Assembly: GCA_029953675.1 (NCBI GenBank)
Contig: JAMWBK010000017.1
Coordinates: forward strand, 1 to 17,875
DNA: 17,875 nucleotides
Source: Rhodosorus marinus CCMP1338
Lineage: Eukaryota; Plantae; Rhodophyta
Direction of reading: 5' to 3'
Within the stretch, counting starts at the first letter, position 1. The number at the start of each line of letters is the position of its first letter. Below are positions 1 to 17,875 of this stretch, piece by piece. A program made the position numbers and the translations under genes. The notes under the pieces are model-generated. The model saw only the letters and a list, made by a program, of their open reading frames with translations, ran no database searches and was not told where the DNA came from.

Positions 1-7
1 CGACACC

Positions 8-720
8 ATGGTTTCCTCCTTGGGGGTCGCCCCGTCTGAATTCCTATATGTGGACTTCACGGGCCCTCATGCCTGTTTTTTCTTGTTACTGACTCGGCTT
101 ACCAGTTCCTTCAATCGCTTGTAACCACTCCCTTCGCGCCCCAGCGCTCTGGCTCTGGCCAACATGATACTGAACTCGTCCTCATGTCTCTTTGTTTGTC
201 GAGTTCGATCGTTTTGACGCCGGCTGGGTTCCTCCGTCGGCCTTGCAAAACCTGGTTGCCTCGCAGGCTTCGGTTGTCGCGCTACACACTCATGCGGCGC
301 GGCTCTCGCGCATACAGGCGAGCCTCTTTCGCGTGTTTTCCTCCCTCGCGGGGTCCTCCGCACCGCGCTAGAGGCCTTCCTCTCCACTGAGGCCACCCTG
401 CTGGAAGCAAGCCCAATTCCTGCGTTTGACCCCTTCTGCCGCCGACTCCTGAGCACCCTTTTCCCTCCCCTCGCCCTGTCTCCGAGGCTCGTGACACCGA
501 CATGGCAGAAGCACCATCGGCCTCTCCGAATCCGCTGGCTCTGGACACCCTCAGCTCAAGACTCCGCTGCTGAAACCCTGTGTCTACTTTCTTCAGGTCT
601 TTTAGTTCCTTCCAAAAGTGCGCCCCCCACGTAAGCGTCGTGCGGCTCCTGAGCCTCCCTCCGAGGCACTCCCCTCCTCCGGATATTTGATCTGCCTTCC
701 CGGACTGAGGGGGAGGCCCG
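8..720 (+). pseudogene. Frameshifted ORF1 homolog of element 1
   Basis: From ATG at 8: MVSSLGVAPSEFLYVDFTGPHACF aligns by eye to ORF1 of element 7 (ALGIPSSYVAHVDFIASHACL). Frameshift in the T run near 77-83. A later PPRKRRAAPEP segment resembles the basic motif near the C-terminus of lineage B ORF1. The end coordinate is approximate. Confidence 0.6.
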
Positions 721-819
721 ATGTCTGGAGTCTTCCCTCCTCCGCGTGTGCGTATCGTCCCGGTTAACTCCCTCGTTTACCAGTGACCGCTCAGCCTGGC
801 ACATGAGCGTGTTCTCTCG

Positions 820-3800
820 TGGTTTTCGCACCTTGTCGCCTCCTACCCGGATTCCGGTTCCCTTCCCCTTTGTCGTCAGAGCACGGCTGTAACGGCTCCT
901 TCGTCGACTTCATAAGCTCCTCTAGGATTGGTGTTGATTTTCTCTGGCAGCAGGTCGCCGCGAACCCTTTCGCTGCTCTCTTCTTCGCTGGGAACTCTTG
1001 TTCTTTTTTTTCCCCGCCTCGTGCTCACCTCCTCTACCGTCCCCGGCAACCCACATCCTCGCCGGGTCCACCCTCGCCGAAAACTGCAAATGTTCCTTTT
1101 CCGGCGACTTTGAGGACCTCGAACGTCTTTATTTCGCTTCTTCTCTCCTCTTTTTTCTCCTAGTGCTCCTCAGCATTTAGGTCTTCTCGACAGAATCGGG
1201 CGATATGTCACGCGGTGGTAGCAGGCGGTAATCTGCGGCGGGCAGCCGGGATCCTCCAGCAGCGGCAACCTGTGGTTCCATACTCCGATGATCTTTCTTC
1301 ACCGCTCCGTTTGCTCTTTCCCTCGGAAGGCTCCCTTGGGACTCCTCGTTTGAATCAGTGTTGGAAGAGTACCGCGCCGCGCCACATCCCAGTGCGCGGT
1401 TAGTGGTCAATCTGGAGGCGGTGCGTGAGTTGGTTCATTATGCTCCGAAGGGCCGTTCTCCAGGGCCCTCGGGGCTGCGGGTGGAATATCTCCGTTTCTT
1501 AAGTGATGAAGGTTTGAAGGCGTTGGCGTTGGTGGTCGAAGCGCTTGTGAATGGTGATCCCCTGTGTGAGTGTGCGTGGTTCTTGGTCGGGCGTTCGCAG
1601 TTGTGTCTGCTTTCGAAGCCCAGCCACACGGCCTCGAGCCCTGCTATTCGCCCTATTGGCCTGGTTGAGGTGGTCCGCAAATTGGCGGCGCGATGGTTAG
1701 TGAAAATCCTGGTTCCCGAATCCCGCCGTTTCTTTGGGCACGTGCAGTTAGGCGTGGGCTATCGTGGTGGCTGTGAGTTGTTGTCTGTTTTACTCCGTTC
1801 CGGAAATGGCGTACTCCCCAGATGCTGGGCTCCTCTCTGTAGATTTTACCAATGCGTTCAACCGCGTCTCTCGTCCGGCTCTCATGCACGTGCTGCGCGA
1901 AGTCTATCCTGTAGGCTTTCCCTTTGTTAGTAGACTTTATTCTCCGCTTGGCCGTGGGGCTACCTATGACACCCTTGGCGCTTCCTCACACACGTTTGCG
2001 GCGCGCACTTTTAGGGTACAACAGGGTGATCCCTTGTCCCCTTTCCTACATGCCTGTGGACTACAACTCGTCTTGCTTTGTCTTCGCTCTGAATTCCCGC
2101 AGGTTCGTACGGTTGCATACCACGACGACGTGTGCCTCCTGGGGCCCCCCGATACTCTAGCGCTCGCTTATGATCGTCTCCGCTCCTTGGCTTCGCGGGT
2201 TGACTTGGAGGTTAATCATCACAAATCGTTCTACTGGGGAGGTGTAGCTGCACAAGAGCAGCAGGTACCTGCGTCGTTCCAGGATATTTGGAGACCGGAT
2301 GGTTTTGTCCACTTAGGCATCCCCTACGGGTCGCCGTCCTTCGTTGAAGGCGAGTTGCTGCAGCTCCTCGGTAAGCACAGACAGCTGGTTGCAGAGCTTC
2401 GACGGCTACCTCCGGGCTTTCTCCAGTGCTCGTTGTTGCTGTTTCGGTATTGTTGCAGTCAGCGGTTAACCTATTGGCTTCGCTCACTTCCAACTCATTG
2501 GGGCCGGTGGTTGGCCACTCGTGCGGATGCTGAAAGTTTCCGTGACCTGGGGTATTTTCTCGATGAAGAGCTGAGCGCTCTGTCAGGTAGGCCTCCCATT
2601 GCGATTGGGGGGACTGGGCCTCTGCAATCGTGTTGTGGTCCAACCTGCAGCCGCAGTAGGGGCCTGGGGAACCGCACTTCCCACTTTGAGCAGCTTGGGT
2701 ATCTCGAAGTTCCGCAATTTGATGGCGAGCCTCTCGCGGGGTGTCTTGCTTCCCAGCGTACCGGAAAGCGCCCAAGACTTGTTTCTGGAGCTCCAAACCG
2801 CCCTGAATTCCTGTACTAGTCTCCCCGAAACCGTTCAACCCCGTCTTCCTGACTGGCGAGCTGTATTTGACCGCTCTCGAGGCTCCGCCCCGGGGATTCG
2901 TCCTGCGCCTGAACCTGTTCTAGGGGAGATTGACCCAGTGGTTGCCGCAGAAGAAGAAGTTCCAGTTGATCCTCCTGATGATTCCCAGCGCGCTGGGAGC
3001 AGAGCTCAAGCACGCACGGATGCGCTGCAAAATATCCTTTCTTGGGACTTGCACCGTGCTGCATATGGCCGACTCCTCGCGCAGATGGTCTCATCTTCTC
3101 GCGCTCGCGCCCGCCTACGTAGTCTTGGAGGGGTTCTTAGCTCTCAGTGGCTCATGACCGTACCAGCCTTTCCGCCACTCACACTGTCGGATTTCGAAGT
3201 GCGTACTTCACTGCGCTTATACCTCGGCTTACATCAGCCCCCTTGGCCGTACGAGATGGGTTCGTCGTGCCCTCTCTGCTCTCAGACTGAAGACAACGCA
3301 GATTTTGGCGCCCAGCTGCTCGCTAGTTGCCCGGTGGTGAAAGGTGCTCGAACCCGCCGCCATACACGGATCTTGAACCTGTTATACCGGGAACTTCGGC
3401 CTATAGTCCGGCAAGCCGGTCTGGAAATCGAACGTGAGAAACCTTTACCCGTCGCGGACTTTCAAAATGATGAACGCCGTGTAGCCGACCTGGTGATCAC
3501 CTGTGACGACAGCCGCCGTACCACATACGTTGATCTTGCTGTTCCTAACCCTCAAGCTAGTCGTTATCTCCCGGCTGCGGGGGAGCGCCGTGGATCTGTC
3601 GCCGCCAGCATGAGACGCCGCAAAGAGATCAAATACGCGGGGGCTTTGTCTTCCCCTGGTGTTCGTGCTTCGGCACTAGCACATCGCTTGGTACCCCTGA
3701 TCATTGAGTGCTTTGGGTTCATAGACTCTGTTGGTTCTCGCTGGCTTCGGGAGTTGTTCCGCGAACGCCCTGACCGTCTTCAATCGTTGTTTACCCGCTT

Positions 3801-3867
3801 AAGTTTCCTGCTGTGGCGCATGAATGCCGCTTTGATGTTGGAGGCGCGAGTTCTTCGCCGCACTTAG
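820..3867 (+). pseudogene. ORF2 of element 1 (RT + zinc knuckle + RLE endonuclease), split by frameshifts
   Basis: Track ORFs 1358-1930, 1764-2819 and 2599-3867 join into one RT-RLE polyprotein with shifts near 1800 and near 2590 (the latter includes a short deletion relative to element 2). YHDD at 2118-2129. The start is uncertain. Confidence 0.9.
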
Positions 3868-3958
3868 TCTTTTTTTCCCCTCGGGGGTTTTGTTTTTTTT
3901 TTTCAACCTCCGATTAAACGATTCGTTTCGCAGTAAGCAGCTGCCCTGTAAAGCTTAC

Positions 3959-3976
3959 GGTTACGTTAGCCTGGGG
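3959..3976 (+). repeat. Junction/target motif, variant GGTTACGTTAGCCTGGGG
   Basis: One mismatch to the motif at 9228, 10168, 14102, 14601, 14907; sits immediately after the element 1 3' UTR. Confidence 0.9.
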
Positions 3977-4013
3977 TTTTCACGCCTTGCGTAGCGCTTC
4001 AGGCTTTGCAAAT
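3977..4013 (+). repeat. 37-bp near-direct repeat, copy 1 (copy 2 at 7727-7763); probable retroelement 3' UTR fragment
   Basis: TTTTCACGCCTTGCGTAGCGCTTCAGGCT is identical over 29 nt in both copies; 2 mismatches over 37 nt. Confidence 0.85.
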
Positions 4014-4110
4014 GAAGAAGAAGAAGAAATAAAGCCAAAGCGAATAAAGCCAATAAAATGATGACGGGCGAAATAAAAAATGAAAGTTTTCATGTGAAAA
4101 CAAGAAAAAC

Positions 4111-4235
4111 CAGAAAAACCGTTGGTGAAGACAAACCCCAGAAAAACCGTTGGTGAAGACAAACCTCAGAAAAACCGTTGGTGAGGACAAACCCCAGAAA
4201 AACCGTTGGTGAAGACAAACCCGAGAAAAACCGTT
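4111..4235. repeat. Minisatellite, 28-bp unit CAGAAAAACCGTTGGTGAAGACAAACCC, about 4.5 copies
   Basis: Units start at 4111, 4139, 4167, 4195, 4223 with single-base variants and no spacers. Confidence 0.95.
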
Positions 4236-4323
4236 CAAGTCTCTCTAAAGTCATGAAAACCCAAAACGGGTCTTTTAGGAGCAAAGCGTTTCTGAGGCAA
4301 AAAGAGTAAAAACCAGAATATCG

Positions 4324-4608
4324 TTAGAATCTTAGTAGATTGCTGGCTTCAATTTGTTGATTAGTAAAGTCCAGTTGAATAGGCCGGGCTCTTGGAGACC
4401 AGGCTGTCGAAGGCCGACTCGCATCCTGGCTTCGTGGCGGTATGAAAACGGGTATATGAACTACGGTTGGTGCTTTTGAGTGGCTATGGTGGCGAAGGAG
4501 CACGCTGAAGGCCCGCGCGAGATTGTTGTGAAGAGTGTTCGTACACGTTGAGGGGAAGGTGTCGTGGCCGGGAAGGGGTTGGGGTCGACATATTAGGTGA
4601 GCACTCAC
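4324..4608 (-). pseudogene. Possible highly decayed RLE retroelement remnant (post-zinc-knuckle and endonuclease region)
   Basis: The minus ORF contains LHNNLARAFSVLL (compare RHNMVRDALATVL in element 3) followed by SRPSTAWSPRARPIQLDFT (compare the RLE RPD...D motif). Similarity judged by eye only. Confidence 0.35.
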
Positions 4609-4701
4609 GAGGATTGAACAAATTTGGTTAAATCAAGACTGAAAAAAAGAAGAGTCCGACGCTTGAAGTGTTCTCGTCGAAGATTTCGAACTATAGTAGC
4701 C

Positions 4702-6113
4702 ATGTTCGCCATGGGTAGAATCATCACGTTCCTTCTGTTAAGTCTGACGCTGCTGGTGACGGTGAGATCTACCGGAGCGGATTCTGCGGATTCAACGTGC
4801 TCTGATGAGCCGCAGTTTACACGCTTTGCTCCTGCTTCCAATCGCTTTATAGCGAATTTGCAAACCAAAAAAGGTTCTGTCGTCGCGACGATCACTATGG
4901 ATGTCGTGGCGAGGAACAACACAAACTGCTTTCTTGCGACGTTTACAGCTGCGGCATCGTCGAGCAGTCTGCTGAAGCTCAGGGCAGGAATCTTCACGAC
5001 AGCAGGGGATCTTCCCACCGGTATGAATAGGGTCACAAGGAGGAAGCTCGTTCCTCAACTCGACCCTTTGAGCAACCCCAGGAGCGAAATGTTCATCTGT
5101 CCCATGAATATGGTGCGGCGGAATACAGATTCTTGCTGTGGACTGCTTGAATTTTTAGCATTTGTCCAAATCCGTGTTGCTCGTTCGAGCGGTACCAAAA
5201 TTGTAACGGGGTATCTAACGCCGACTGGACGTACAAATCGGCCATGCCGAGTCCAAGACCCGGCGAACCCTTTCCGCTACGTCTGTACATTGGAAACCGT
5301 CTGTACACCGGAACCCACCTGCGAGTGTGCCCCGGGCACCTGCCGAGGAGAGGATGGGAGTTGCATTCTTATTAGTGACTTTTCTGCAAACTGTGCAAAT
5401 AATCAGGTGTGCCCACCTGCCCTTCTCCGTGCTCTCCCGTCGACCTTTTGGCGAAGCAGAAACAAGTCTGACCATGTCTCCCTGATTCGTTCCCCTCTGC
5501 TCATGTTTCGTATAGTTTGCTGCGGCGAACCCCGAGAACGAAGCGTGTGAATGCGCGGATCTTGAGTGCTCAGGATCGGAATGCATCGAAGACGGACAAT
5601 GCGTCGGAGCTAGAGGGTGGGGCCAGCAATGCCCTTCTGGCGAGGTATGTCCGTGGACTCTCAACCACAAGTAAACCGAACGGTAATTTACGTTCGTAGA
5701 TGTGGCTCAGAACAAATCTTTCTGTGTCCCGTTTTTGTATCAAGTTTGGAGCAGCGGATGATGCGGGGATATGTAGTTGCCAAGACACTTGTCCGCCCGG
5801 GAGATGTCTTGACGTCGTCAGCAAAGTTTGTGTGGGTCCTAATCCCGGCAATTGTCGCCAGAGTTCCGCGGTATGAGAGATTTGCAACTGGGTCATATTG
5901 CACAAATCGAATTACTCACAATAACTTGGGTATTCACACGGTTCACGCACATAGTTCCAATTCTTGGATCCAGATACGGGCTTTTGTCTTTGTTTGCAAG
6001 GCTGTAATAACTGTGCGCCGGGATCTGTACGTTTGTTTCCCCATTCTGACATCACGCGTGTTCGCCTTTCGAATTGCGATGGACTGCGTCAGTGTTCCTG
6101 TCACGAAAACTGA
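4702..6113 (+). CDS. Four-exon host gene for a putative secreted cysteine-rich protein (exons 4702-5406, 5516-5644, 5745-5870, 5955-6113)
   Basis: N-terminal hydrophobic stretch (MFAMGRIITFLLLSLTLLVTVRS) looks like a signal peptide. Three GT..AG phase-0 introns (donors GTGTGC, GTATGT, GTATGA) join Cys-rich exons in frame (129, 126, 159 nt), ending CSCHEN-TGA. Alternative in-frame acceptor at 5699; alternative start at 4711. Confidence 0.75.
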
Positions 6114-6404
6114 GAAAAAAAAACTAACATGTAATATGGATCTAATTGTCGTCATGTAGGTGCCCACACCGACGGCGGATAAGAGCCGGTGTGAATGTGT
6201 TTCCCAGATTGACCCGTGACCTGATCGTACTAGCCAATTTTCGCGAGAAAGTAAGAGCATGAATTTTCCTCAACGCAGAACGCGAATCTCTCCTGGACTT
6301 TACACATAGTCTGTAACACCCCACCGAGCTAGAAAAGTAAAGGAAAAGCTACACACGCTGCCGCTCACGCAAGGTTACTCAGCTCTCCCTTCACACCGCC
6401 TCCA

Positions 6405-7023
6405 TCACCGCCGCCTTGACGTCGATGGCCTACTACTTATCTATGCGGTGATGACGAACGGTAATGACGGGGCGAAGACGACTCCCTCAAAAACCATAAG
6501 ACTCGATCTGAACATCAGGGAGGTGTCACAGGGGACAGTGGCGCGCGAGTTCATCACGAATGCGATTATGGCGCAGAGTCCAATTCCCGCCCAAGGTAGA
6601 ACAGTGAAATAGTCCCATCCGATGCGTGAGGCTTGGCACAGACGTTGCATTCAGGGGGATTGATGGAGGCAGCAGCTGCATCGCCTGCGGGAAGCGCCTT
6701 AGACCAAAGAGCGAGCTTTCGAATACGAGCAAAAGTGCGGGAGTTGAGGCGGGAAGTTGTCCATCGCCTAGCCAGCGAGAGCTGCAGTTCCAGTTGATCC
6801 GTTGAGCTGGCGAGATCCTCAAGATGTTCGGCATTAGGCCCCGGGACACGCAGTATCCAGACGGCTCATAAAAGGGATTGCCAGCGGCATTATTCCGAAG
6901 CCCGCGGAGCCACGCGGCATAAGAAGCAATCGGGTGAATGCGAACGCTCGTAGCCAGGCCAAGCCCTCCCCACTTGCCAGGTAATCGAATTTGGGTTTTC
7001 ACTGTATTAGGTGAGAGGAGCAT
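6405..7023 (-). pseudogene. Decayed, internally deleted lineage-B-like retroelement fragment in inverted orientation
   Basis: QIRLPGKWGGLGLATSVRIHPIASYAAW matches QISLPCRWGGLGFATRARIQPIAFFSAW of element 4. CNVCAKPH (alternate frame) and FHCSTLGGNWTLRHNRIRDEL match the zinc knuckle. GSRLRPVI...AIDVK with stops matches the RLE of element 3. Confidence 0.85.
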
Positions 7024-7566
7024 TGGGGTTTTGTTTCTTTTTCGGTCACGAGCGTGTTCGTTTACGGGAAGCGCTTCCTTTGGTACGCCTTCCCCCCGTT
7101 TTTCAGGGGTGCGTCGTTTGCAATTGCAACTACTTCTGTCTTCCGGGTGAGAGTGTTGCGGGGCCTTTCCTATTTGGGTTGGGTGTGTCGATTATTCTCT
7201 CGTTGAGGTCTCATATTGGTGGTGCAACGTTTCCTTTGCGCTTTCCCTCAGGATGGTAGGGATATCTCCGCGCTCGACGGAGCCTCATCCCAAGGAGGCA
7301 CTGCCAGGTGGGGGACTCCGTGTTCGCCTCAGCTGCGGCACCTTTTCTTCCGAGGTTGACTTGGAGACCGCTTCTGGCACCCAGGCGCGTGCACTTATCT
7401 TCGTTGTCACCAGCCTGATAACGGCTGCGAGTGATCGTGGAGTGCTTCCTCAGCTCACCCAGAAGCTAGGTGGGCTGGAATCGGGGCCGCTGGCCAGGCC
7501 AAATTCAAATTCGGACGAGAATTTGAATTGCACCAGAGTGGCAGCGTTGGCTGAAGGCAGTCGGGT

Positions 7567-7767
7567 TTGGAGTGGCTGCGGAAATGTTTTGCTGAGCATC
7601 CTGTTGAATATTTGGAACTTTTGCGTCGTTTAAGCGTGTCTCTGTGGCGCTACTCGAGCAGCATGCTTGGTCAGGCGCGCCATAGGCGCCTGGGTTTGCA
7701 CGCTTCCCTACCTAGTTCTTAGTCCCTTTTCACGCCTTGCGTAGCGCTTCAGGCTATGCTAATAAAG
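7567..7767 (+). pseudogene. 3' remnant of another lineage-A-like element (C-terminus, stop 7720-7722, 3' UTR ending in AATAAAG)
   Basis: LEWLRKCFAEHPVEYLELLRRLSVSLWRYSSSMLGQAR aligns with element 1 SRWLRELFRERPDRLQSLFTRLSFLLWRMNAALMLEAR. Confidence 0.7.
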
Positions 7768-7994
7768 TCCACCCACTCTGCGACTAATCAGCGAACGTGA
7801 AGGGTTCGAACACCACGGCGTCGGATTGGGGACTGACAACTTTGTCCAAGCATCCTGCGAGCGAGTTTTGGCACGGCACAAGTCCACCCACTCTGCGACT
7901 AATCAGCGAACGTGAAGGGTTCGAACACCACGGCGTCGGATTGGGGACTGACAACTTTGTCCAAGCATCCTGCGAGCGAATTTTGGCACGGCAC
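7765..7994 (+). repeat. 115-bp tandem duplication at the 5' truncated end of element 2
   Basis: 7765-7879 equals 7880-7994 except one base (CGAGTTTT vs CGAATTTT); AAG begins both copies and the following sequence. Confidence 0.95.
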
Positions 7995-9222
7995 AAGCAA
8001 CTCACCGACGCCATTGAGCACCTACCCGACAGCATGCTGCAATCGGCCTGCTTGCTTTCCCGCTTTTGTGCCGGTCCCAGACTCAACTACTGGTTGCGCA
8101 GCCTGCCTCCAGCTTGGGGCTCGTGGATCGCGGCTAAAGCCGACGAAATGACCCTGCAACACTGGGGAACGCTCTTGGATGAGCCCCTCGATCTTGAAGC
8201 TGCTCCCGACAGGGACTTTATTCGTGCACAGATCGCTCTACCGTTGCGATTAGGGGGATTCGGCGTCGCTGACCGTGGGCTGGTATGCTCGCCAGCGGCG
8301 GTTGCCTCCTGGGCTACCACGCTGCGAACGTTGGTGACCTTCCAGATGCGAAGTGCCTGCCTCTTGGCTCGAGCTTTGACCAACGAGGATCCAGTGACCC
8401 TGCCGCCCCCGCTTTTGACAATTTATGATGGTCTTCAACACGCGTTCAGGAGGTGCAACGCCGTGCCGGACGCAAATCGGTCCCGCTTTCGTTCCTGGAG
8501 GGAGCTGTTATGGGGACGAGCTGAAGCGATTGAGGATTGTCCCCTCGACCGAGTTCTTGCCGATGACGGAGAGGCCAGCCCCGGGTCACCTGTTGCAGAC
8601 TACCCGTGTTTGAGCCGATTGTGGAGCTCCCGCACTGATGTGATTCAACATAGCCTCACCTGGGGCCAACACAGTGCCGCTCACACAGTCATGCTCAATT
8701 CTCCTCTCACGCCGCCTACCACTGCCGCTCGTCTCCGCGGCATGGGAGGCCACCTCTCGCACTTGTGTTTAACCACTCTACCGTCGTCATTGAGTCATCG
8801 TCTCGATGCTTTCCAGTTCCGTTCTGCCGCACGGATCTATCTCGGTTTGCCACAGGCTCCGTGGCACTCTAATCGGCCGTCTTTCTGTCAGGGATGTGAG
8901 AGCCGGATTGACGCTAGTGGCTACCACTTCCTGGGTTCCTGCGGACTGTTACGAGGTCTCCGTACGAGGCGTCACACTCGCCTCAAGTACATCCTCAGCG
9001 AATCTTTGACTCGGATAGGGCATACGGTTGAGGTTGAGTCGGAACTGCCCAGATCCATCTCGGACTCTGCACCGCCCCGTTGTATAGCCGATCTCCTCGT
9101 CTCCGACGCTGCTGCCAGACGCTCAACATATGTGGACCTTGCGATTACCTGCCCCGTGGCCAGCGCCCACCTCACCGCAGCCGCCCGCCGCCGGGGGGCC
9201 GCGGCTTCAGCCCTTCGAAGAG
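7765..9222 (+). mobile_element. Element 2: lineage A subfamily, truncated at both ends (late RT region, linker, zinc knuckle, first half of RLE)
   Basis: Open frame from about 7880: EGFEHHGVGLG, RLNYWLRSLP, QIALPLRLGGFG, CQGC...HFLGSC...RTRRH, IADLLV...YVDLAI; homology stops at ASALRR before the RLE lysine motif. Confidence 0.92.
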
Positions 9223-9248
9223 TCTGGGGTTACGTTAGTCTGGGGTAC
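9221..9248 (+). repeat. Junction motif in tandem: AGTCTGGGG TTACGTTAGTCTGGGG TAC
   Basis: About 1.5 contiguous units define a 16-nt period; fused directly to coding sequence of element 2. Confidence 0.93.
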
Positions 9249-10089
9249 CCAAAAACTCCTCTCCAACTGGAGTCACCGACGGGCATTCGAGGAAATGGTG
9301 GAGAACGCGGAGATCAGCGAGACGGCACGTGCGCGAATACGCTCCTGCAAGGGATCAGGAGGCGGTACTTGGCTGCGAGACTTGCCAATGAAACACGGAC
9401 GCGGCCTAAGTAGCGGAGAACTGAACCTGAGCCTTCGACAACTGTTGGGATTGCCCCTGCCGGGTGTACGAATACTTAGTACGTGTACGATATGTTCCCA
9501 ACCACACGACGCTGCAGGCATTCAACGCCTTCACCACTGCACCAGCTCTACCGGCAGTTGGACAATTCGGCATAACATGGTCAGGGACGCCCTGGCGACA
9601 GTGCTGAGACAATGGCGACTAGAAGTGACAATAGAACCGACCGGACACTACCAAGGCAGTCGGCTTCGGCCTGACATTCTAGCCCGACACCCACGAACAG
9701 GCAAGCTCTACGTGATCGATGTGAAGGTGACCTCGCCTTTGCAAAGAACACACCTCCACAAAGCGTCTTGGGAGACCGGGTATGCGGCACGGAAAGCGGA
9801 AAAGTTTAAAGAGTCCAAATACCGTGACAGTATCGGAGAACATAACGACGACATCTTCGTCCCCTTCTGCCTGGAAACATTTGGGCAGATGGGACAACAA
9901 GCGAGTGAGTTCCTCAAGGAAGCGACTATACACCTGGATCAGCGGGCAACGCAAGTAAGTGAGGCTCGGGCGATCTTGAACCGCACTTTGTGGAAAGGAA
10001 ACGCTATCCTTGCCACCCAGGCTCGTCGTGTCGACGAAGCAGACTATGACATCGTCCCTATCTTCGAACGTAGCCACACAACCCATTAG
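9247..10089 (+). CDS. C-terminal part of ORF2 (zinc knuckle + RLE), 5'-truncated
   Basis: CTICSQPH...HHC...RHN; RLRPDILARHP...YVIDVKVTSP...AEKFKESKY; FVPFCLETFG; stop TAG at 10087-10089. Confidence 0.85.
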   Translation, partial: TQKLLSNWSHRRAFEEMVENAEISETARARIRSCKGSGGGTWLRDLPMKHGRGLSSGELNLSLRQLLGLPLPGVRILSTCTICSQPHDAAGIQRLHHCTSSTGSWTIRHNMVRDALATVLRQWRLEVTIEPTGHYQGSRLRPDILARHPRTGKLYVIDVKVTSPLQRTHLHKASWETGYAARKAEKFKESKYRDSIGEHNDDIFVPFCLETFGQMGQQASEFLKEATIHLDQRATQVSEARAILNRTLWKGNAILATQARRVDEADYDIVPIFERSHTTH

Positions 10090-10167
10090 GGGTTTCTTTG
10101 CTGACCAATAGGATCCTTATTGCTTCTTAATGGGCTCCAATAGGGAGTTCTTCAGTAAAGTGTACGC
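9249..10167 (+). mobile_element. Element 3: 5'-truncated lineage B (subfamily B1) copy with intact 3' end
   Basis: Begins directly after the motif in mid-ORF2, ends with the 3' UTR ...CAGTAAAGTGTACGC before the next motif. Confidence 0.93.
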
Positions 10168-10185
10168 GGTTACGTTAGTCTGGGG
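10168..10185 (+). repeat. Junction/target motif GGTTACGTTAGTCTGGGG
   Basis: Exact motif between the 3' end of element 3 and the truncated 5' end of element 4. Confidence 0.95.
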
Positions 10186-10187
10186 CA

Positions 10188-10883
10188 ATTCCTCTTCTCC
10201 AAAGCGCAATCAGCCGGGGTGTGTTCCGGACTGGGATTTTCGGATCCTTTACCATGCGACACCCCGATCGACAGGTGAGCCTGTACACCGGGCACGGTTT
10301 AGAGGCGGATAACCTGCTGGGGTTCAACGAGCGGCAACGACTCGCCGGCGGAGATGTCAGGGCTCAAACGCTGAGACGAGCGATCGAGCAGATCATACGC
10401 ATCCGCGCGCGGCTGAGCCGTCGACATCTCTCGTTTACAACTCTCGCCCGAGTGCACGAGATGCTGGACCAACGGCTTGAAAAGTTACAAGCCCTTCAAC
10501 AGCAACCTGCGGTATCCAGGGAGAGCGCGGAACCCCTAACGACTGCAGCCGCACCAAACGCAGCCGCTGAAGCCTCGTCGTCTCCGGACGATGCACAGGC
10601 AGCCTGTGGGACTGTTGCCACTCAGGGTGACTCCGGTGGAACATCCCAAGTACCGCAGGATGTGGAAGAAGAGGACAATCCCCATGCGGAACTCTCGTGC
10701 AACTTGCCGGAACCTCCTCAACTTAAGCGCTCGCGCCGGTCTGCCAACGGATCTAGCACGGATGCAGAAATGACACCAGCTCCCCTCGACCCCACACCGA
10801 GCGAGAATGGACTACAACCTGAAACTGCAGCCAATACAAACCCGTCGGTTCAGCAGGAAGCGCAGGACAACGAGCAATCATAA
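10188..10883 (+). CDS. ORF1 C-terminal portion (5'-truncated) of element 4
   Basis: IPLLQSAISRGVFRTGIFGSFTMRHPDRQV is nearly identical to element 7 ORF1; acidic/Pro-rich tail; TAA at 10881-10883. Confidence 0.85.
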   Translation: MPLLQSAISRGVFRTGIFGSFTMRHPDRQVSLYTGHGLEADNLLGFNERQRLAGGDVRAQTLRRAIEQIIRIRARLSRRHLSFTTLARVHEMLDQRLEKLQALQQQPAVSRESAEPLTTAAAPNAAAEASSSPDDAQAACGTVATQGDSGGTSQVPQDVEEEDNPHAELSCNLPEPPQLKRSRRSANGSSTDAEMTPAPLDPTPSENGLQPETAANTNPSVQQEAQDNEQS

Positions 10884-13800
10884 TGCCGTCCAGACGCAGG
10901 GGACGTAAACGCCCACGAGAAGAGCCTCTGTTCTTCTCTGACCGGGAGGCCTGGATTTGCCGCTGGAACGCTTTCGTAGCTGAGATCACGGAGGAGGGGA
11001 GGCATTGGACGCGCATCACACATTGCCCGGTGCCCACACGACACTTCGTGCCCCGAGCACACGTTTCTACATGGAGCCGGCTTCTTCGGGCTGCCCTCGA
11101 GCTTTCTCTGGACGCGACAGCACCTCCATTAGCGAGCCTGCTTCTCGTCGGCCTTCCGGGTCTGGTCCTGGGCCACTCCACCCTTGACACAGGGGTACAG
11201 GTCGCACATGTACTAGAAGGAGAGTTCCAGCGGGTCTGGACGGCCCTTGAGGAGAAAGCCGCCTCAATGAAACCCCCACCTACACCACACGGTGCCGAAG
11301 ACGTTCGTCGACGAGTCGATGGCCGCCGCAAACAAGCACTTAAACTAGCACGACTCGGCCGCCTCTCGGATGCTGCAAGAAGACTCGAGGCCACCGAAAT
11401 GGCGCCTTTCACAGCGGCTACCTGGCGGCAACTACAACAGCTCTTTCCGAGCCCCGCCAGTGTGGATTCACCGGTGGAGATTGTGGAAGCCCTCCAAGGC
11501 CTACTCACGACGGACAACGACACACTGAAGAGGCGGTGGGATCCAAAAATGGCTGCCGACGAAGGCCTCCTCTCAATCGTGGCACGACTACCTCAAGGGA
11601 CGAGCCCTGGACCGAGTGGAATGCGCGCGGAACATTTGCAAGGGGCGAACCAACAGACTCAGGTAGCACTGATTCGGGTCTTGCGCCAACTCGCCACCGC
11701 GCCCGGGCGATTCTCACCCCTTCTGCTACGAGCCTTGCGTAGCAGTAGACTTCTGCCTTTCTCGAAGCCAGCACAGGGGGGTAACTCCCAGGCCAAGGCA
11801 GGGATCCGCCCAATAGGCGTGCCGGAGGTCCTACGCAAAGTGGCAACTCAGTGGGCGCTGCGAGCGGTGATGGACCGGGTCCGCGAGCTGTTGGTGCCGT
11901 TGCAGCTGGGAATCGGGGTCAGCGGTGGCTGTGAACGGTCACTGCACGCCATCCAGGCCCACCTGTCATGTGAACCAGACTCGGTTGCACTTCGACTGGA
12001 CCTCGAGAACGCCTTTAACCGCATTGACAGGCGAATTGCCAAGAAACTGGTGGCCCAGCACTTCCCTGAGCTCACAGCGGTGTATAGGCTCGGATATGGA
12101 GGCGATGGGGAAACACCGACGCTTTGTGGATGGCGGACGACGCAAGAAGACAACCACCTGCACAAGGACAGACTGACGCTGCAAGCAGAAACCGGAGTAC
12201 AACAAGGCGACCCTTTAGGTCCGGTGCTACATGCGCTCTCCCTGGCCCCTTTTCTCAAGGCACTCAGCAACAAGTTTCAGGGAGTCACGATCGTCGCCAT
12301 CCATGACGACATCACTCTGGTCGGCGCATTGCCTATATTGAAGGAGGCTCTCCAATGGGGACAGACCCTGCTACCGTGCCTTGGAGCCCGCCTGCAGCTC
12401 AGCAAATGCAGCCTTTATGGTCGATCCCTCACCACTACACGCTTGGTGAACCGTGCGATTCCCGGCGTGCAAGTGACTAGGGAAGGCCTCACAATCCACT
12501 CCATCCCCATCGGCACTCGGCAGTACATCGAGCACGAGTGTAGACGGCTGCAGAACAAACACGAGACGCTGTTCAAGGAGATTTCGAGCCTGCCAACCGA
12601 TGAACTGCCTATCCAGCTTGCGCTTTACAGGTATTGCGCTGAAACGAGGTTGGATTACACCTTGCGATGCCTTGCCTACCCGTTTGGACGAGCTCTGGCC
12701 AGGGAAGCGGACAGTATGAGCCGATACCACTTAGAGGTCTTGTTTGGTGGCCTCTGCACGACGGCCTTGGTCGAGGATGAGCTGATACACCCGGTCAACG
12801 AGCAGATTTCGTTGCCCTGCCGATGGGGCGGATTGGGGTTCGCGACCCGTGCAAGAATACAGCCGATTGCGTTCTTCTCGGCCTGGGCGCAGACCCTGAG
12901 AGACCATGCGGGTCAGTGGCCCTATATAACGGAGGTGGAGCGACAGGTCAGGCAAGGTGGCGACATACACATCAGCCACCTAGGCCGACTGCAGGTGTCA
13001 ACGGAGACGATCGGTGAGCAAATCCGCGCGTCTAGTCGTGCTATAGAGCGGAGACTGTGCCCAGACACGGCGCCGCGGATCCGGAGACTGGCCAAGCTGC
13101 CCGAATTGAGAGACGAAGCCGCACCTGAAGTAGCGGACTCCCCTCGCGATTGGAACCATGGTTCAATACAACAAACCCTCTCTAGGGAGGCACACCATCG
13201 CGCGTTCCAACGTTTGGTCGGCAACGAGGGCGTTTCGCATGAACACCGTGCAAGAATCCGATCGGCGGCCGGCTCGGGTTCGGGGGTATGGCTGCGGGAA
13301 CTACCGTTGCTAGAGCCGAGAAAGCTGGACTCACAGGAATTGCAGGTAAATGTTCGACAACTGCTGGGGCTGCCGATTCCGGGGTTGCGGACAACGGAGC
13401 AGTGCACCAGTTGCCGTAGGAAACATGGCCCAAATGGGGTGCAACGATTTCAACACTGTCCAACATCGACGGGACTATGGCAGAGACGGCACGACGAGCT
13501 CTGTACGGAGCTAGGGAGATGGCTCAACCGATGGAATTTTCTTGACATACAGCAAGAACCGCAGAGGTATTTTGAGAATTACCAGCTGCGACCAGATATC
13601 GTGGCGACCCATCCAAAGACCTTTCAAAAAGTACGCGATCGATGTGACGGTGATTTCACCGCTACAGGAAAAGTACATAAGGCGTGGCAGTGCAGAAAAC
13701 GGGTATGCAGCGAAACTGGCGGAGAACTACAAGCTCGCGCACTATAAAGAGGCGATGAGTGTGGAAAAGCCCGAGGAGAAGTTCATCCCGATCGCGATAG

Positions 13801-14021
13801 AGACCTTTGGGCGGAGCGGGAGGTTGACGCAAGACTTTTTGCGGGACAGTTGTAAACACTTGTTGCATCGAGATGAGGAGCTGAGGGATGCACGATCCCA
13901 GTTAAACAGGATCCTATGGCAGGGCAACGCGGCGATTGCGCTTGGCGCTCTACGTGCGGACCAGTTGGAGAACCCACTGGTTCCTGTTTTTTCTTTTGAA
14001 CGTAGCATGAGACCCCGGTAG
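10883..14021 (+). CDS. ORF2 of element 4: reverse transcriptase + zinc knuckle + RLE endonuclease, one +1 frameshift near 13626
   Basis: Track ORF 10883-13747 continues in 13542-14021 after an extra A in CAAAAAG. Motifs: GTSPGPSG, IRPIGVPE, LDLENAFN, GVQQGDPLGP, AIHDD (12296-12310), CTSC...HC...RH, RPDI...YAIDVTV...AENYKLAHY. Confidence 0.95.
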
Positions 14022-14101
14022 CGGGGTTGTTGTGAGTGATTCCCTAGATAGCAATCGGCTTAGTGTTACGTCGCATTAGGCGACTGCCCAATAAAGCTCA
14101 C

Positions 14102-14118
14102 GGTTACGTTAGTCTGGG
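14102..14118 (+). repeat. Junction/target motif GGTTACGTTAGTCTGGG followed by T and 13 A
   Basis: Motif directly after the element 4 3' UTR; A run at 14120-14132. Confidence 0.93.
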
Positions 14119-14119
14119 T

Positions 14120-14600
14120 AAAAAAAAAAAAATGCGCTGGATGTGACGGTGGTGTCACCATTACAGGGAAAATATTTGCGGCGGAGCCAAGATGATAGCG
14201 GATACGCGGCGAGAGCTGCGGAGAAGTGGAAAATCGCTCACTACAAAGAAGCGATGGTGATCGAGAAACCGGATGATAAGTTCATCCCGATAGCAATAGA
14301 GACGTTTGGGCGTACGGGGCAAATGGCACAGGAGTTCCTCCGGGACAGCTGCAAGCACTTACTGCATAGGAGTGAGGAGCTGAGAGACGTGAGATCCCAG
14401 ATAAACCGGCAACTATGGCGAGGTAACGCAGAGATAGCATTAGGCGCTTTGCGCGTGGACCAGCTGGAGAATCCGCTGGTACCTGTTTTTTCTTTTGAAC
14501 GTAGCATGAGACCCCGGTAGCGGGGTTCCAGTAAGTTTTTCCCTAGATAGGATTAGACGTAGTGTTGCGCTGCAGTAGGCAGCTGCCCAGTAAAGCTTAC
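14120..14600 (+). mobile_element. Element 5: short 5'-truncated B2-related copy (RLE C-terminal half + 3' UTR)
   Basis: LDVTVVSPLQ...FIPIAIETFG...FSFERSMRPR is a diverged paralog of the element 4 C-terminus; stop at 14520. Confidence 0.93.
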
Positions 14601-14618
14601 GGTTACGTTAGTCTGGGG
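14601..14618 (+). repeat. Junction/target motif GGTTACGTTAGTCTGGGG
   Basis: Exact motif between elements 5 and 6. Confidence 0.95.
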
Positions 14619-14906
14619 TTTGGGCAGATGGGACAACAAGCGAGTGAGTTCCTCAAGGAAGCGACTATACACCTGGATCAGCGGGCAACGCAAGTAAGTG
14701 AGGCTCGGGCGATCTTGAACCGCACTTTGTGGAAAGGAAACGCTATCCTTGCCACCCAGGCACGTCGTGTCGACGAAGCAGACTATGACATCGTCCCTAT
14801 CTTAGAACGTAGCCACACAACCCATTAGGGGTTTCTTTGCTGACCAATAGGATCCTTATTGCTTCTTAATGGGCTCCAATAGGGAGTTCTTCAGTAAAGT
14901 GTACGC
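14619..14906 (+). mobile_element. Element 6: 288-bp 5'-truncated copy of subfamily B1
   Basis: Matches 9880-10167 with two substitutions seen by eye. Confidence 0.95.
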
Positions 14907-14957
14907 GGTTACGTTAGTCTGGGGTTAGTCTGGGGGTACAGTTACGTTAGTCTGGGG
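14907..14957 (+). repeat. Irregular tract of junction-motif units (telomere-like)
   Basis: GG TTACGTTAGTCTGGGG TTAGTCTGGGGG TACA GTTACGTTAGTCTGGGG. Confidence 0.92.
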
Positions 14958-15020
14958 TGACGGGTTTGGACGGCTTTGTTTGTGAAAAACGACGGAAAAA
15001 GGTGATAAAAAGTTACAAGT

Positions 15021-16612
15021 ATGATTGTGAAGGAGGTACGCGGGCCGTACCCCGAGCCTCTTGTGATCGCGGGCCCACACACCTCGGGTACCCGCGAAAT
15101 GGAGAGGGCGAAAGAGCTGCTACAAGAGCAGCAGCAGCAGCAGCAGCAACAGCACCAGTATAGGGGAGCAGAACAGGAGGCAGAGAGGAATGCAGAACAG
15201 GGTGCAGCGGAGCAGGCCACAGCAGACCCAGCTGTCGCCTTTCTCCACCAACTGCAGAGCTACGACCACTGCTATACCGCCCTGGGAATCGGCCAGTCGG
15301 ACATCGCCGACTTCTACCAGGCCGCCTTCAACCTCTATTCCCGCATCAACTGCTCAAAAGAACTTCAATCAGTGACAGGACGTCTGAATGAGCTCGCCAA
15401 AAAACCGCATATGTGGCAAGACGGACGAGCCACTACGACCCCGCCTCAACCCCCGCAGCAGCACCCGCGGACGGCGGCGGTCAATCAACATGCGGCAGAA
15501 CCCATCATCAATCAACTTGCGGAGGGGACAGGTGTCCTTGCCTCACTGGACTATGCCACGGCCTTCCCGGTTGCCGGTATCAGCAGCACACGGCCAACGT
15601 ACGCTCAGAGGACTGCCCAAAGTACTCCAGCTCGAGAATCAGAGGCTCAACTCCGACCAGCCGGGCGCCCGGGCCCACAGAGCCAGCAGGCAGCGCTACG
15701 ACAGTTGCACGCCACTGTGGGAGGGTCCTCCTGGGGACCTGAGACCAAGCCGGTACTGGCGACCCTGAGGAATGTAAGACCGCCACGGATGGACGAGGTA
15801 GCCCCATCGGATTTCACCACGGTCCTTTGCAGAGCCTTGGGGATTCCGAGCTCTTATGTGGCGCACGTGGACTTCATCGCTTCCCATGCGTGCTTACTCT
15901 GCCATCCGGACGCGATTCCGATTCTACAAAGCGCCATCTCTCGGGGCGTTTTCAGGACGGGCATCTTCGGTTCGTTCACCCAGAGACACCCCGATCGGCA
16001 AGTGACTCTCTACACGGGCCAGGCACTGGATACAGACAACCTGTTGGGCTACAATGAACGTCAGCTCATTGCCCCAGCGAATATCGGGGCTCAGACCCTG
16101 AAACGGGCGATTGAACAGACTATCCGGATCCGCGCGAGACTCCGCAGAAGGCAACTCTCGTTCAACACACTCGCAGCGATACACGAGTACCTGGAGAGCA
16201 GACTCGGAGCCCTACAAGCCACACAACGTACTCCAACGGTACCCGGGGAGAGCGCGGAACCCCCAGCGCCTGCAGCCGCCACGAACGCAGACCCTGAAGC
16301 CTCGTCCCTTCCAGGGGATGTACAGGCAGACCGTGGGAGAGTTGACGCCTCGGTTGAGACCAGTGCGACTTCCCAAGTACCTGAGAACGCAGCACACGAA
16401 GACAATCCCCATGCGGAGCTCCTCTGTGCAACCTTCCGGAGCCACCTCAACAGAAGCGCTCGCGAGTGGCCGCCGATGGCACCGGACCGGATACTGAGAT
16501 GACTCCGGCAGCCGTGGAGACTCCACAGGATACCACTGGGACACAGGTTGCCGTTGACGGCAACCATCACGCGATGGACACGCAGGAGAGCCAGGAAAAC
16601 CCAGCGCAATAA
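15021..16612 (+). CDS. ORF1 of element 7 (about 530 aa, unknown family), one frameshift near 16420
   Basis: Track ORF 15021-16502; after the shift the alternate frame reads CNLPEPPQQKRSR (as in element 4) and ends at TAA 16610-16612. PolyQ, central conserved block, disordered tail. Confidence 0.85.
15129..15152 (+). repeat. (CAG)6CAACAG polyglutamine tract in ORF1
   Basis: Read directly; encodes Q8. Confidence 0.9.
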
Positions 16613-17875
16613 TGCCGAGCAGACGTAGGGGAATCAAACGACGCCGCGAAGAGCCTCTTTTCTTCTCGGATCGTCAAGACTGGATCAGGCGGTGGAGCGT
16701 CTTCGTCGACGACGTCACGGAAGGAGGCAGGCAGTGGACGCGCCTTACACACTGCCCGGTTCCCACACGGCGATTTGTGCCACGCGCCCAGGTTCACACA
16801 TGGAGCTGCCTCTTCCGTGCTGCATTAGAGCTCTCTATGGACAGCACCGCACCAGCAAACGCCAGCCTGCTTCTTGTCGGACTTCCAGGCCTTGTCCTCG
16901 GACACTCTGCACTTGATGTTGGCATTCAGGTATCGCATGTGCTTGAAGGAGAATTCTCTACGGTCTGGAGCGCTCTAGAGGACAAGGCGTCTATGCTGTC
17001 GCGTACTACCGCACCGCAAGGAGCTGAAGCGGTTCGACGCAAACATCTCGGGCGCCACAAGCGAGCGCTGAAACTAGCACACCTTGGCCGCCTTTCAGAC
17101 GCAGCTCGGAGCCTACAGGCCACCGAAATGGCACCTTTTACCGCGGCTACGTGGAGACAACTACAAGCGCTCTTTCCCAACCCGGCGGAAGGTGACTTAC
17201 CAGACGAGATTGCACACGCACTGCAATCTTTGCTCGCTCTGAATACCGAAACACTAAAGCGGCGGTGGGATTCAAGAAAAGCGGCCGACGAGGGCCTCAT
17301 GTCGATCGTGGCACGTCTTCCTCAGGGCAAGAGCCCAGGCCCTAGCGGTCTCCGAGCGGAACACCTCCAAGGTGCAACCCAACAGACGCAAGTGGCGTTG
17401 ATTCGTGTATTGCGACAACTGGCGACCGCTCCTGAGAAATTTTCCCCGGCTCTGACCCGCGCCCTTCGCAGTAGTCGACTCCTGCCGTTCACGAAGCCTA
17501 ACAAGGGTTCAGTGCCGCAGGAGCATCCCGGAGTTCGCCCTATCGGAGTGCCAGAAGTTTTGCGCAAGGTAGCAACGCAATGGACTCTTCACGCGGTTAT
17601 GGACAGGGTGCATGAGCTCCTGGTGCCCTTACAACTGGGTATAGGAGTAAGTGGCGGGTGCGAACGCTCGCTTCACGCGATCCAGGCCCATTTGTCATGC
17701 GAACCCGATTCGGTGGTCCTTCGCTTAGACCTTGAGAATGCCTTTAATCGCATCGACCGACGCCTTGCCAAGCAACTGGTGGACGAACACTTGCCGGAGC
17801 TTGCACCAGTGTATAGACTTGGCTATGGAAGCGACAACGCGGACTCACCGACGCTCTGTGGCTGGCGATCTTCCT
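16612..17875 (+). CDS. ORF2 N-terminal part of element 7 (to RT motif LDLENAFN), partial; frameshift in T run near 16660
   Basis: MPSRRRGIKRRREEPL, then open to the window end after a one-base shift: GKSPGPSG, VRPIGVPEV, QLGIGVSGGCE, LDLENAFN. Missing from the ORF track, probably because it has no stop inside the window. Confidence 0.9.
   Translation, partial: MPSRRRGIKRRREEPLFFSDRQDWIRRWSVFVDDVTEGGRQWTRLTHCPVPTRRFVPRAQVHTWSCLFRAALELSMDSTAPANASLLLVGLPGLVLGHSALDVGIQVSHVLEGEFSTVWSALEDKASMLSRTTAPQGAEAVRRKHLGRHKRALKLAHLGRLSDAARSLQATEMAPFTAATWRQLQALFPNPAEGDLPDEIAHALQSLLALNTETLKRRWDSRKAADEGLMSIVARLPQGKSPGPSGLRAEHLQGATQQTQVALIRVLRQLATAPEKFSPALTRALRSSRLLPFTKPNKGSVPQEHPGVRPIGVPEVLRKVATQWTLHAVMDRVHELLVPLQLGIGVSGGCERSLHAIQAHLSCEPDSVVLRLDLENAFNRIDRRLAKQLVDEHLPELAPVYRLGYGSDNADSPTLCGWRSS

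Follow-up and report, generated by a model that had tools for sequence, protein, structure and literature searches.

A probable subtelomere-type array of diverged R2/CRE-like retrotransposons at a 16-nt T/G-rich unit in the red alga Rhodosorus marinus

Telomere-associated retrotransposons with a restriction-like endonuclease (RLE) have so far been described from a few fungi (MoTeR, FoTeR and Cnl1). MoTeR1 and MoTeR2 of Pyricularia (Magnaporthe) oryzae and the FoTeRs of Fusarium oxysporum encode a reverse transcriptase (RT) with a C-terminal CCHC/RLE domain and form head-to-tail arrays at chromosome ends, with very short repeat tracts between the copies. They are accompanied by 5′-truncated copies, tiny relics, a companion element that is shortened internally, and rearranged or internalised copies beside host genes. 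Cnl1 of Cryptococcus neoformans, a CRE-clade element, builds large subtelomeric arrays at many chromosome ends, made up of both full-length and truncated copies, and related CRE-clade elements are telomere-targeting.

Here, we analysed a window of 17,875 nt from the red alga Rhodosorus marinus. It is the whole of JAMWBK010000017.1, one of four small unplaced contigs. We consider that it is probably a subtelomere-type array, in which several diverged lineages of R2/CRE-like RLE retrotransposons have inserted by target-primed reverse transcription (TPRT) into a 16-nt T/G-rich unit. The properties of MoTeR and FoTeR listed above recur here, the place at chromosome ends being a putative one. The differences are that ORF1 is separate, that three or more diverged lineages use one site, that the host is a red alga, and that the target is a proven TTAGGG telomere in the fungi and an unproven 16-mer here. 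The strand relation also differs. In MoTeR and FoTeR, the sense strand runs on into the C-rich strand, with (CCCTAA)n or, in FoTeR, (TAACCC)n beyond the 3′ end, so that the terminus is on the 5′ side of the elements; here, the 3′ end borders on the T/G-rich strand and lies toward the contig end. Cnl1, in contrast to the multi-lineage array, is a single family that is also able to hit ordinary genes.

Other known elements share only some of these features. SLACS, CZAR, CRE1 and CRE2 of trypanosomatids share strict site specificity with the present elements, and belong to the class LINE/CRE to which the pipeline of the genome authors assigned the R. marinus families, but they insert into the spliced-leader RNA gene. 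Rfam and tRNA scans of the window gave no match, and a spliced-leader, snRNA or tRNA target was therefore rejected. TRAS1 and SART1 of Bombyx mori are LINEs specific for telomere repeats, in which they occur in both orientations, and SART1 has the ORF1-ORF2 link UAAUG found in lineage B; they carry an APE-type endonuclease and poly(A) tails, whereas no APE domain was found here. R2 has the same nuclease domain, precise 3′ and variable 5′ junctions and an RNA 3′ end related to its target, as here, but its one ORF carries zinc-finger and Myb domains at the N-terminus, and it targets 28S rDNA. The HTT elements of Drosophila have 3′ ends toward the centromere and need no element-encoded endonuclease; neither property fits.

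An initial annotation of the window had proposed two-ORF retrotransposons with an RLE, and domain searches confirmed this. Pfam RVT_1 matched the copies E4 (E = 4.5e-9) and E1 (E = 2.3e-7), with profile matches in all copies, and was the only Pfam match. When a profile of the C-termini of ORF2 was compared with the PDB, a CCHC/PD-(D/E)XK domain was recognised by its match to the R2 nuclease domain (E = 5e-8). The alignment covers CCHC, RH(D/N), (K/R)PD and D, and C22, C25, C40, R50-H51, D86 and D101 are near-invariant. The published CRE REL motif is C-x1-3-C-x7-8-H-x3-4-C-x9-10-RH(D/N)-x19-33-E-x9-21-(R/K)PD-x12-14-(D/E). In lineages B and C, the spacing from RH(D/N) onward (x9, x19-20, x10, x14) is an exact fit, and the motif order is that of SLACS, CZAR and CRE (C..C..H..C-x9-RH(D/N)-x19-20-E-x10-RPD-x14-D), while the CCHC spacing departs from the published motif (C-x2-C-x13-HC in B and C; C-x2-C-x9-H-x4-C in A2). 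The REL motif fits R2 as well and, therefore, does not discriminate between the clades. The best profile matches were almost only unnamed metagenome proteins, none of eight window ORFs had an exact match in the protein collection, and the annotation of the R. marinus genome lacks the retrotransposon ORFs. The RepeatMasker table of the genome paper assigns 9.04% of the genome (24 families, 2.82 Mb) to LINE/CRE by automatic label. We infer that the elements in the window belong to these 24 families, their CRE name resting on that label. Thus, the suggestion of an undescribed group needs qualification: such repeats had been tabulated, with no description given.

The first copy, E1 (lineage A1, 1-3960), has lost its 5′ end at the contig start. 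Its ORF2 (RT and RLE; tblastn and profile matches at 1385-3855) is split over three frames, the upstream part is rich in stops, and the 3′ end reads ...AGTAAAGCTTACGG. This copy and the features below lie on the + strand, except for one fragment. E1 is followed by a variant of the unit, TTACGTTAGCCTGGGG (3961-3976). The interval 3977-7768 had been taken for one element but is composite. It begins with a 5′-truncated, 41-nt copy of the A2 3′ UTR (3977-4017, ...GCAAATGAAG) and an A-rich reiterated tail (to 4120; (GAA)5, (AAAGCCAAT)2.3 and (AAAACCAGA)2.7 by TRF), matching 18496-18579 of a second locus, L036. It also holds a 28-nt tandem repeat, the host gene NDN08_000999 (4702-6221), for which our gene model has five exons, four phase-0 GT..AG introns and a product of 363 amino acids that has a signal peptide and contains 31 Cys, and a degenerate, inverted fragment of the ORF2 linker and N-terminal RLE region (6415-7008, - strand). 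The last component is an internally deleted A2 element (7029-7768), in which the 5′ UTR and the start of ORF1 (~534 nt) are fused to the C-terminus of ORF2, with a stop codon and a 46-nt 3′ UTR ending GCTAATAAAG. It is 93% identical to L036 13172-13706 and 84% to L036 17747-17956 (89% for the ORF1 N-terminus). The A2 matches in L036 replaced our earlier explanation of 3977-7768, which had invoked an insertion and a 41-bp duplication.

E2 (lineage A2, 7769-9222) begins with a 115-nt tandem duplication and is truncated at the 5′ end and, inside the RLE domain, at the 3′ end; its relatives in L036 extend beyond this point (...GAAGAG|TTAAGGAACG). It is capped by TCTGGGG and a full unit (9223-9245, 1.44 units). 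E3 (lineage C, 9246-10169) is a 5′-truncated copy of the RLE domain and 3′ UTR followed by a unit (10170-10185). E4 (lineage B, 10186-14103) is truncated within ORF1, whose stop overlaps the ORF2 start as TAATG at 10881; its ORF2 has 954 amino acids, and a single frameshift falls within an A5 run near 13626, ahead of the last 130 codons. The unit variant TTACGTTAGTCTGGGT and A13 follow (14104-14132). Next are E5 (lineage B, C-terminal RLE and 3′ UTR, 5′-truncated, 14133-14602), a unit (14603-14618), and the 290-nt E6 (lineage C, 14619-14908). The spacer at 14909-14957 contains a unit, TTAGTCTGGGG(G), TACAG and another unit, that is, irregular 11/16-nt units. E7 (lineage B, 14958-17875) has a 63-nt leader and an apparently complete 5′ end. 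Its ORF1 (15021-16611) has a 2-nt insertion near 16425 and is linked by TAATG at 16610 to an ORF2 that is open up to the contig end (421 codons). Of the claim of at least seven same-strand copies, the existence of the copies held, with RT and nuclease pieces mapping to all of them. The count rose to nine or ten + strand pieces and one inverted piece, and the array is neither purely same-strand nor purely made of retrotransposons.

The junctions follow simple rules in three of the lineages. The 3′ ends of A1, B and C all lie against GG|TTACGTTAGTCTGGGG, as was read directly for E1 (...GCTTACGG|TTACGTTAGCCTGGGG, 3961-3976), E3 (...GTGTACGCGG|unit, 10170-10185), E4 (...GCTCACGG|TTACGTTAGTCTGGGT, 14104-14119), E5 (...GCTTACGG|unit, 14603-14618) and E6 (...GTGTACGCGG|unit, 14909-14924). 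Every variably 5′-truncated start is preceded by TCTGGG(G): TCTGGGG for E3 (9246), E4 (10186), E6 (14619) and E7 (14958), and TCTGGG-T-A13 for E5. Both junction rules agree with the initial annotation, as does the use of one insertion point by deeply diverged lineages, the amino-acid identity being 27-37% between A1 and B and 46% between B and C. The truncation point is different in every copy (E4 is ~950 nt shorter than E7; E5 keeps ~470 nt and E6 290 nt). Fixed 3′ ends, variable 5′ truncation and the absence of LTRs constitute a TPRT footprint.

A duplication origin, segmental or tandem, or misassembly of this short Nanopore contig, which is rich in repeats, would be another source of such a pattern. 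The unplaced status of the contig, the near-identity of E3 and E6 (99%; two differences in 306 compared positions), the 115-nt tandem duplication and frameshifts in homopolymer runs, which may be sequencing errors, are in its favour. We regard this explanation as very improbable, because adjacent copies differ in lineage, truncation point and flanks, and because the same junction rules are seen in a 2.2-Mb contig.

The unit TTACGTTAG occurs seven times in the window, always on the + strand, against a mean of 0.02 expected (none of 200 shuffles reached seven). With up to one mismatch, TTAGTCTGGG occurs nine times against 0.95 expected. Motif-like strings are found only on the + strand in both the window and L036. 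A 16-mer scan of metagenome contigs gave 32 contigs with a single match each, none related to the window, which is the chance level; a 23-mer (1.4 units) had no match in prokaryote genomes; and unrelated primers were the only matches to the motif strings in the full-text literature. The introns and a resemblance of the unit to the Yarrowia repeat TTAGTCAGGG would have suited a fungal source, but the host is a red alga.

No tandem TTAGGG, TTTAGGG or AATGGGGGG repeats were found in the window or L036. The unit is most likely the chromosome-end repeat of this species or a derivative of it, and the arrays would then lie at chromosome ends with their 3′ ends outward. The irregular 11/16-nt units at 14909-14957, the unusual character of red-algal telomere repeats and the telomere targeting of related CRE-clade elements speak for this reading. 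Other observations speak against it. The longest tract in the 39 kb covered by the two loci has ~2.7 units, and in four of the six spacers the length is that of one unit exactly; a 16-bp target-site duplication or a unit carried by RNA explains these facts at least as well.

A possible but less likely alternative is that the 16-mer is a self-propagating target or tail and not a telomere repeat. New copies would recreate the site and nest at each other's 3′ ends at any place that the first copy had reached, either because strand cuts 16 bp apart duplicate the unit or because a read-through RNA brings the donor's downstream unit, and the subtelomeric place would reflect tolerance only. Besides the single-unit spacers, this could explain AATAAA/AGTAAA 8-10 nt upstream of the unit and the A13 after the unit of E4, which resembles polyadenylated RNA, although an A-run is present in only one of six copies and E5 itself has A5 there. 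The partial TTAGTCTGGGG could be an abortive cDNA, and 20-bp target-site duplications have been published for RLE elements.

The fourth lineage, A2, points in the same direction. E2 and its relatives have no 16-mer at the 3′ end, contrary to the proposal that all elements use it; instead, they have a reiterated A-rich tail made of their own last 9-10 nt, and A2 copies insert straight after the 3′ ends of older A2 copies. Further points against the chromosome-end reading are that A2 shares the arrays without the unit and that the window array includes a host gene and an inverted fragment.

Evidence on position came from the second locus. The families of the window recur in L036, starting 15.8 kb before the end of contig 7 (2,212,799 bp), directly after housekeeping genes; the sequence covered stops 4.8 kb short of the contig end. 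All its RT/RLE matches and unit-like strings are on the strand running 5′ to 3′ to the contig end, so that the 3′ ends and the G-rich motif strand are directed there. This is the polarity of a telomeric G-strand, which argues against a merely self-propagating unit. At the border with unique DNA are two tandem unit-like 12-mers, TTACGTCCGGGG TTACGTGCGGG, with no element 3′ end upstream, and the units on either side of the first L036 fragment are too dissimilar for a simple duplication. The link of the array to a chromosome end thus gained real support. The earlier claim of a chromosome-end array with outward 3′ ends is supported by this array in the last 16 kb of contig 7; the window itself is unplaced.

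The orientation of L036 also bears on end attachment as in Drosophila HeT-A/TART, 3′ end first and without an endonuclease, with truncation by terminal erosion and the unit as a 3′ tail. A head-to-tail array with variable 5′ truncation would be expected from it. However, it needs 3′ ends toward the centromere and is contradicted by L036, where unique genes lie 5′ and the contig end 3′ of the array; moreover, the elements encode a conserved RLE nuclease. We consider this the least probable explanation.

Under our preferred reading, insertion into a putative end repeat, TPRT would place A1, B and C at ...TCTGGGG^TTACGTTAG.... The nuclease would nick the C-rich strand (5′-CCCCAGACTAACGTAA^-3′), and the freed 3′-OH could prime cDNA synthesis on an RNA 3′ end carrying a conserved module. 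Early stops of reverse transcription would give the variable 5′ truncations. Since a unit flanks both sides of each insertion, the target would be regenerated and head-to-tail arrays could grow. The 1.44 units after ...AG of the 3′-truncated E2 are as expected from healing of an eroded end, but can also have arisen by deletion via AGT microhomology.

Red-algal telomere repeats are unusual, mostly unknown, and have been called recalcitrant to standard analysis. A bolder and rather unlikely extension is that R. marinus chromosome ends essentially consist of these arrays with single 16-nt units between copies, and that retrotransposition, with or without a telomerase making an irregular 11-16-nt repeat, is a main route of their maintenance; the resistance that red-algal telomeres have shown to TRAP and hybridisation assays would thereby be explained. 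Against the chromosome-end reading itself, the CRE elements amount to 2.8 Mb. This exceeds what the ends would have to accommodate, and many copies may therefore be located elsewhere.

The chromosome-end reading would make this the first case of telomere-associated RLE retrotransposons in a red alga. Several anciently diverged lineages would converge on one site, with a strand relation opposite to the fungal one, in families making up ~9% of the genome. Should the 16-mer prove to be the end repeat, it would provide a motif for the whole class Stylonematophyceae, and a culturable unicell whose assembly is near-complete would allow the interplay of telomerase and retrotransposons to be tested directly.

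The conserved 3′ module consists of a small hairpin, A(A/G)TAAAG and then N2-4-ACG(C)GG, which resembles TTACG of the target, and it appears to have been exchanged between lineages. In the 3′ UTR hairpin, three of five pairs are changed on both sides; because 51 of 500 shuffles gave the same result, this is only a hint. The TACAG in the spacer before E7 equals the last 5 nt of the 3′ end of a B sublineage (...AGTAAAGGATACAG in L036), and TACAG with its unit fits a micro-insertion of that 3′ end.

The 16-nt, telomere-like motif between elements (the unit) is real and repeated on one strand, as the initial annotation had proposed: TTACGTTAG occurred seven times in the window, only on the + strand, with 0.02 expected from shuffles, and the longer core TTAGTCTGGG, with at most one mismatch, occurred nine times against 0.95 expected. 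Direct reading of the junctions bore out the claim that elements 1, 3, 4, 5 and 6 abut the motif, and made it a strict rule. The 3′ ends of E1, E3, E4, E5 and E6 (copies numbered from left to right) have the form ...A(A/G)TAAAG-N2-4-ACG(C)GG and are followed immediately by TTACGTTAGTCTGGGG, with only two point variants of the unit, a C after E1 and, after E4, a T as the last base. As had also been noted, TCTGGGG immediately precedes the start of the next element, with E5 the exception (TCTGGG-T-A13), and this start is at a different internal position every time. Such constant 3′ ends combined with variably truncated 5′ ends are what target-primed reverse transcription leaves behind. The best reading of TACAG plus a unit at 14937-14957 is an insertion in which just the five terminal bases of a B-sublineage element were copied.

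The long ORF (ORF2) contained Pfam RVT_1 as the sole domain found. An alignment of its C-terminal 220 residues, taken from four copies in the window and seven relatives in databases, had C..C..C, RH, D and D as near-invariant residues. Used as a profile, this alignment matched the nuclease domain of the R2 protein in PDB (E=5e-8), residue for residue at CCHC, RH(D/N), (K/R)PD and D. From RH(D/N) on, lineages B and C fitted the SLACS/CRE spacing given in the FoTeR paper. The separate upstream ORF1 had no Pfam match and was weakly similar (E=4e-6) to ORF1 of a relative with two ORFs from a metagenome contig. In lineage B, the stop codon of ORF1 overlaps the start codon of ORF2 in the string TAATG (10881-10885 and 16610-16614), an arrangement of the type known for SART1.

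The copies fall into four lineages: A1 (E1; 41% amino acid identity to A2 in the reverse transcriptase, RT), A2 (E2 and relatives; about 31% to B), B (E4, E5 and E7; 76% between E4 and E7) and C (E3 and E6; 46% to B). Overall, A and B are 27-37% identical. Every window copy is truncated or frameshifted; two frameshifts, in short runs, could be Nanopore assembly errors. The family combining RT with a restriction-like endonuclease (RLE) is huge: a profile search with a cutoff of E<=1e-30 retrieved 10,042 representative proteins, mostly unnamed algal or metagenomic ones, and the protein closest to the window ORF2 was only 27% identical. The lineages also differ in sense-strand AT skew (window 1-3960 compared with 9246-17875), A1 and A2 being T-rich (-0.2 to -0.35) and B and C A-rich (+0.1 to +0.2).

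The final 50 nt of A1 and B, including the unit, were 94% identical (3930-3960 compared with 14572-14602) although their proteins were just about 30% identical. This likeness suggests that a 3′ terminal module has been exchanged or is strongly constrained, and such a module might define the target and be exchangeable between lineages. In all three unit-using lineages, a 5-bp hairpin with an ANTAG loop precedes A(A/G)TAAAG (14058-14103, 14557-14602, 10125-10169 and 3915-3960). Three of its five pairs are changed on both sides with pairing kept, but the statistical support is weak: there are just four distinct sequences, and 51 of 500 shuffles gave an equal result. In the mechanism we propose, the nuclease would nick the C-rich strand opposite GGGG^TTACG, and the freed 3′-OH (...CTAACGTAA) would prime reverse transcription of an RNA whose 3′ end (...CTTACGG, ...GTACGCGG or ...GATACAG) resembles TTACG of the target. 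This RNA may run on into the donor's downstream unit, because AATAAA or AGTAAA lies just 8-10 nt before the unit.

The single annotated R. marinus protein matched by an ORF1 query, NDN08_004843, lies on contig 7 (2,212,799 bp), where we analyzed a 21-kb locus (L036; positions 2,186,696-2,207,983, forward orientation). Three housekeeping genes, the last ending at 9060 of the locus, are followed by two tandem unit-like 12-mers, TTACGTCCGGGG TTACGTGCGGG, adjoining unique DNA at 10236-10258. After these come a B-lineage 3′ fragment of approximately 85 nt ending AGTAAAGGATACAG, a canonical unit, then a 5′-truncated B element, and then a full-length A2 element and more A2 copies. All RT and RLE matches and unit-like strings there are on the + strand without exception. 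The cluster starts 15.8 kb from the end of contig 7, and both the 3′ ends and the G-rich strand of the unit face that end, a polarity that the G-strand of a telomere would be expected to have. HeT-A-like end attachment was excluded because it requires the opposite orientation. Close to the contig end, A2 copies are separated by about 2 kb of unrelated DNA (18620-20688) that contains several short annotated ORFs.

The claim that all families insert into the 16-mer did not hold for A2 (window 3977-4120 and 7029-9222; L036 13172-18620 and 20689-21288), which ends GCTA(A/G)TAAAG without the 16-mer. On its 3′ side is either a tail reiterating its own last 9-10 nt, such as (TCCAGTAAAG)2 and (CCAATAAAG)2, or a directly adjoining 5′-truncated A2 copy; therefore, A2 seems to use its own tail as an insertion site. 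The stretch at window 7029-7768 is an A2 element that keeps both ends intact but has an internal deletion, by which the 5′ UTR and ORF1 start are fused to the ORF2 C-terminus and 3′ UTR (about 740 nt, compared with 4.8 kb for a full element); by analogy with MoTeR2 and MoTeR1, it may be a non-autonomous derivative. Comparison with L036 identified the 41-nt repeat at window 3977 and 7727 as the A2 3′ UTR. In the L036 A2 element, 31 nt separate ORF1 and ORF2, unlike the overlap in lineage B. The truncated 5′ end of E2 carries a 115-nt tandem duplication (7765-7997, 99% identical), both repeats of which are matched by one L036 copy.

Nor is the array all same-strand or purely made of retrotransposons, as first described: it contains an inverted nuclease fragment (7008->6415) and a single non-transposon gene, NDN08_000999 (4702-6221), which has five exons and encodes a secreted protein rich in Cys; its first exon matched the R. 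marinus gene at 99% identity. Our model predicts 363 amino acids that include a signal peptide, 31 Cys and one F(A/G)AA..C.C module per exon; the annotated version has 329 amino acids, spans to 6262 and covers just 60% of exon 1. The product matched nothing in Pfam, and 5.8 billion clusters contained neither a paralogue nor a homologue of it. Between the A2 tail and this gene, a 28-nt tandem repeat, CCAGAAAAACCGTTGGTGAAGACAAACC, is present in 4.5 copies with 94% match (4110-4235).

We consider it fairly probable that the unit is telomere-derived. Its position and polarity at L036, its T/G-rich TTAG...GGGG form, and its irregular 11-, 12- and 16-nt variants, with TTACG and TTAG included or omitted, point this way, as do the tandem 12-mers that adjoin unique DNA without an element end upstream. 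Long odd repeats are known in red algae (AATGGGGGG, TTTATT(T)AGGG) and in Yarrowia (TTAGTCAGGG), and related fungal elements target telomeres. Against this reading, no long unit tract was seen in the window or L036. The 3′ truncation of E2 is real (...GAAGAG|TCTGGGG followed by the unit, with ...GAAGAG|TTAAGG in the L036 copies), and the truncated copy is capped by 1.44 units after AG, the dinucleotide that also precedes TCTGGGG within the unit. This cap supports a telomeric origin, but it could also be a microhomology deletion. A self-propagated target that is not telomere-derived, which we find somewhat unlikely, would simply explain why four of the six spacers measure exactly one unit, by a 16-bp target-site duplication (one of 20 bp is known for Utopia) or an RNA-borne unit; A2, whose tail is clearly its own, behaves analogously.

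The window is the whole of JAMWBK010000017.1, one of four small contigs in a Nanopore assembly of 31.2 Mb. According to the genome paper, the 13 large contigs extend for the most part to telomeres; the paper makes no statement of the telomere motif. Its supplementary RepeatMasker output lists 24 LINE/CRE families (2.82 Mb, 9.04% of the genome; divergence 0.9-30%) without further description, and our literature search beyond that paper found no mention of these families or of the motif.

The system resembles MoTeR, FoTeR and Cnl1, RLE elements whose arrays have short spacers and tiny relics, a companion element shortened by deletion and rearrangements nearby, and lie at chromosome ends, as the algal arrays probably do. 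In the red alga, however, the strands are related in the opposite way, the motif is another one and only putatively telomeric, ORF1 is separate with a TAATG junction, and one site is common to at least three old lineages. The nearest database relative, a two-ORF element on a 5-kb metagenome contig (L001), lacks the 16-mer. Its own 3′ end recurs as an inverted copy a short way upstream of its 5′ end (1-114 compared with 4909-5022; ..CCCGCCCACTTGG..GAGTCAATAAAT..TGTTGTTGTT), so that a second copy adjoins, and the upstream copy has its 3′ end turned toward the 5′ end of the downstream copy.
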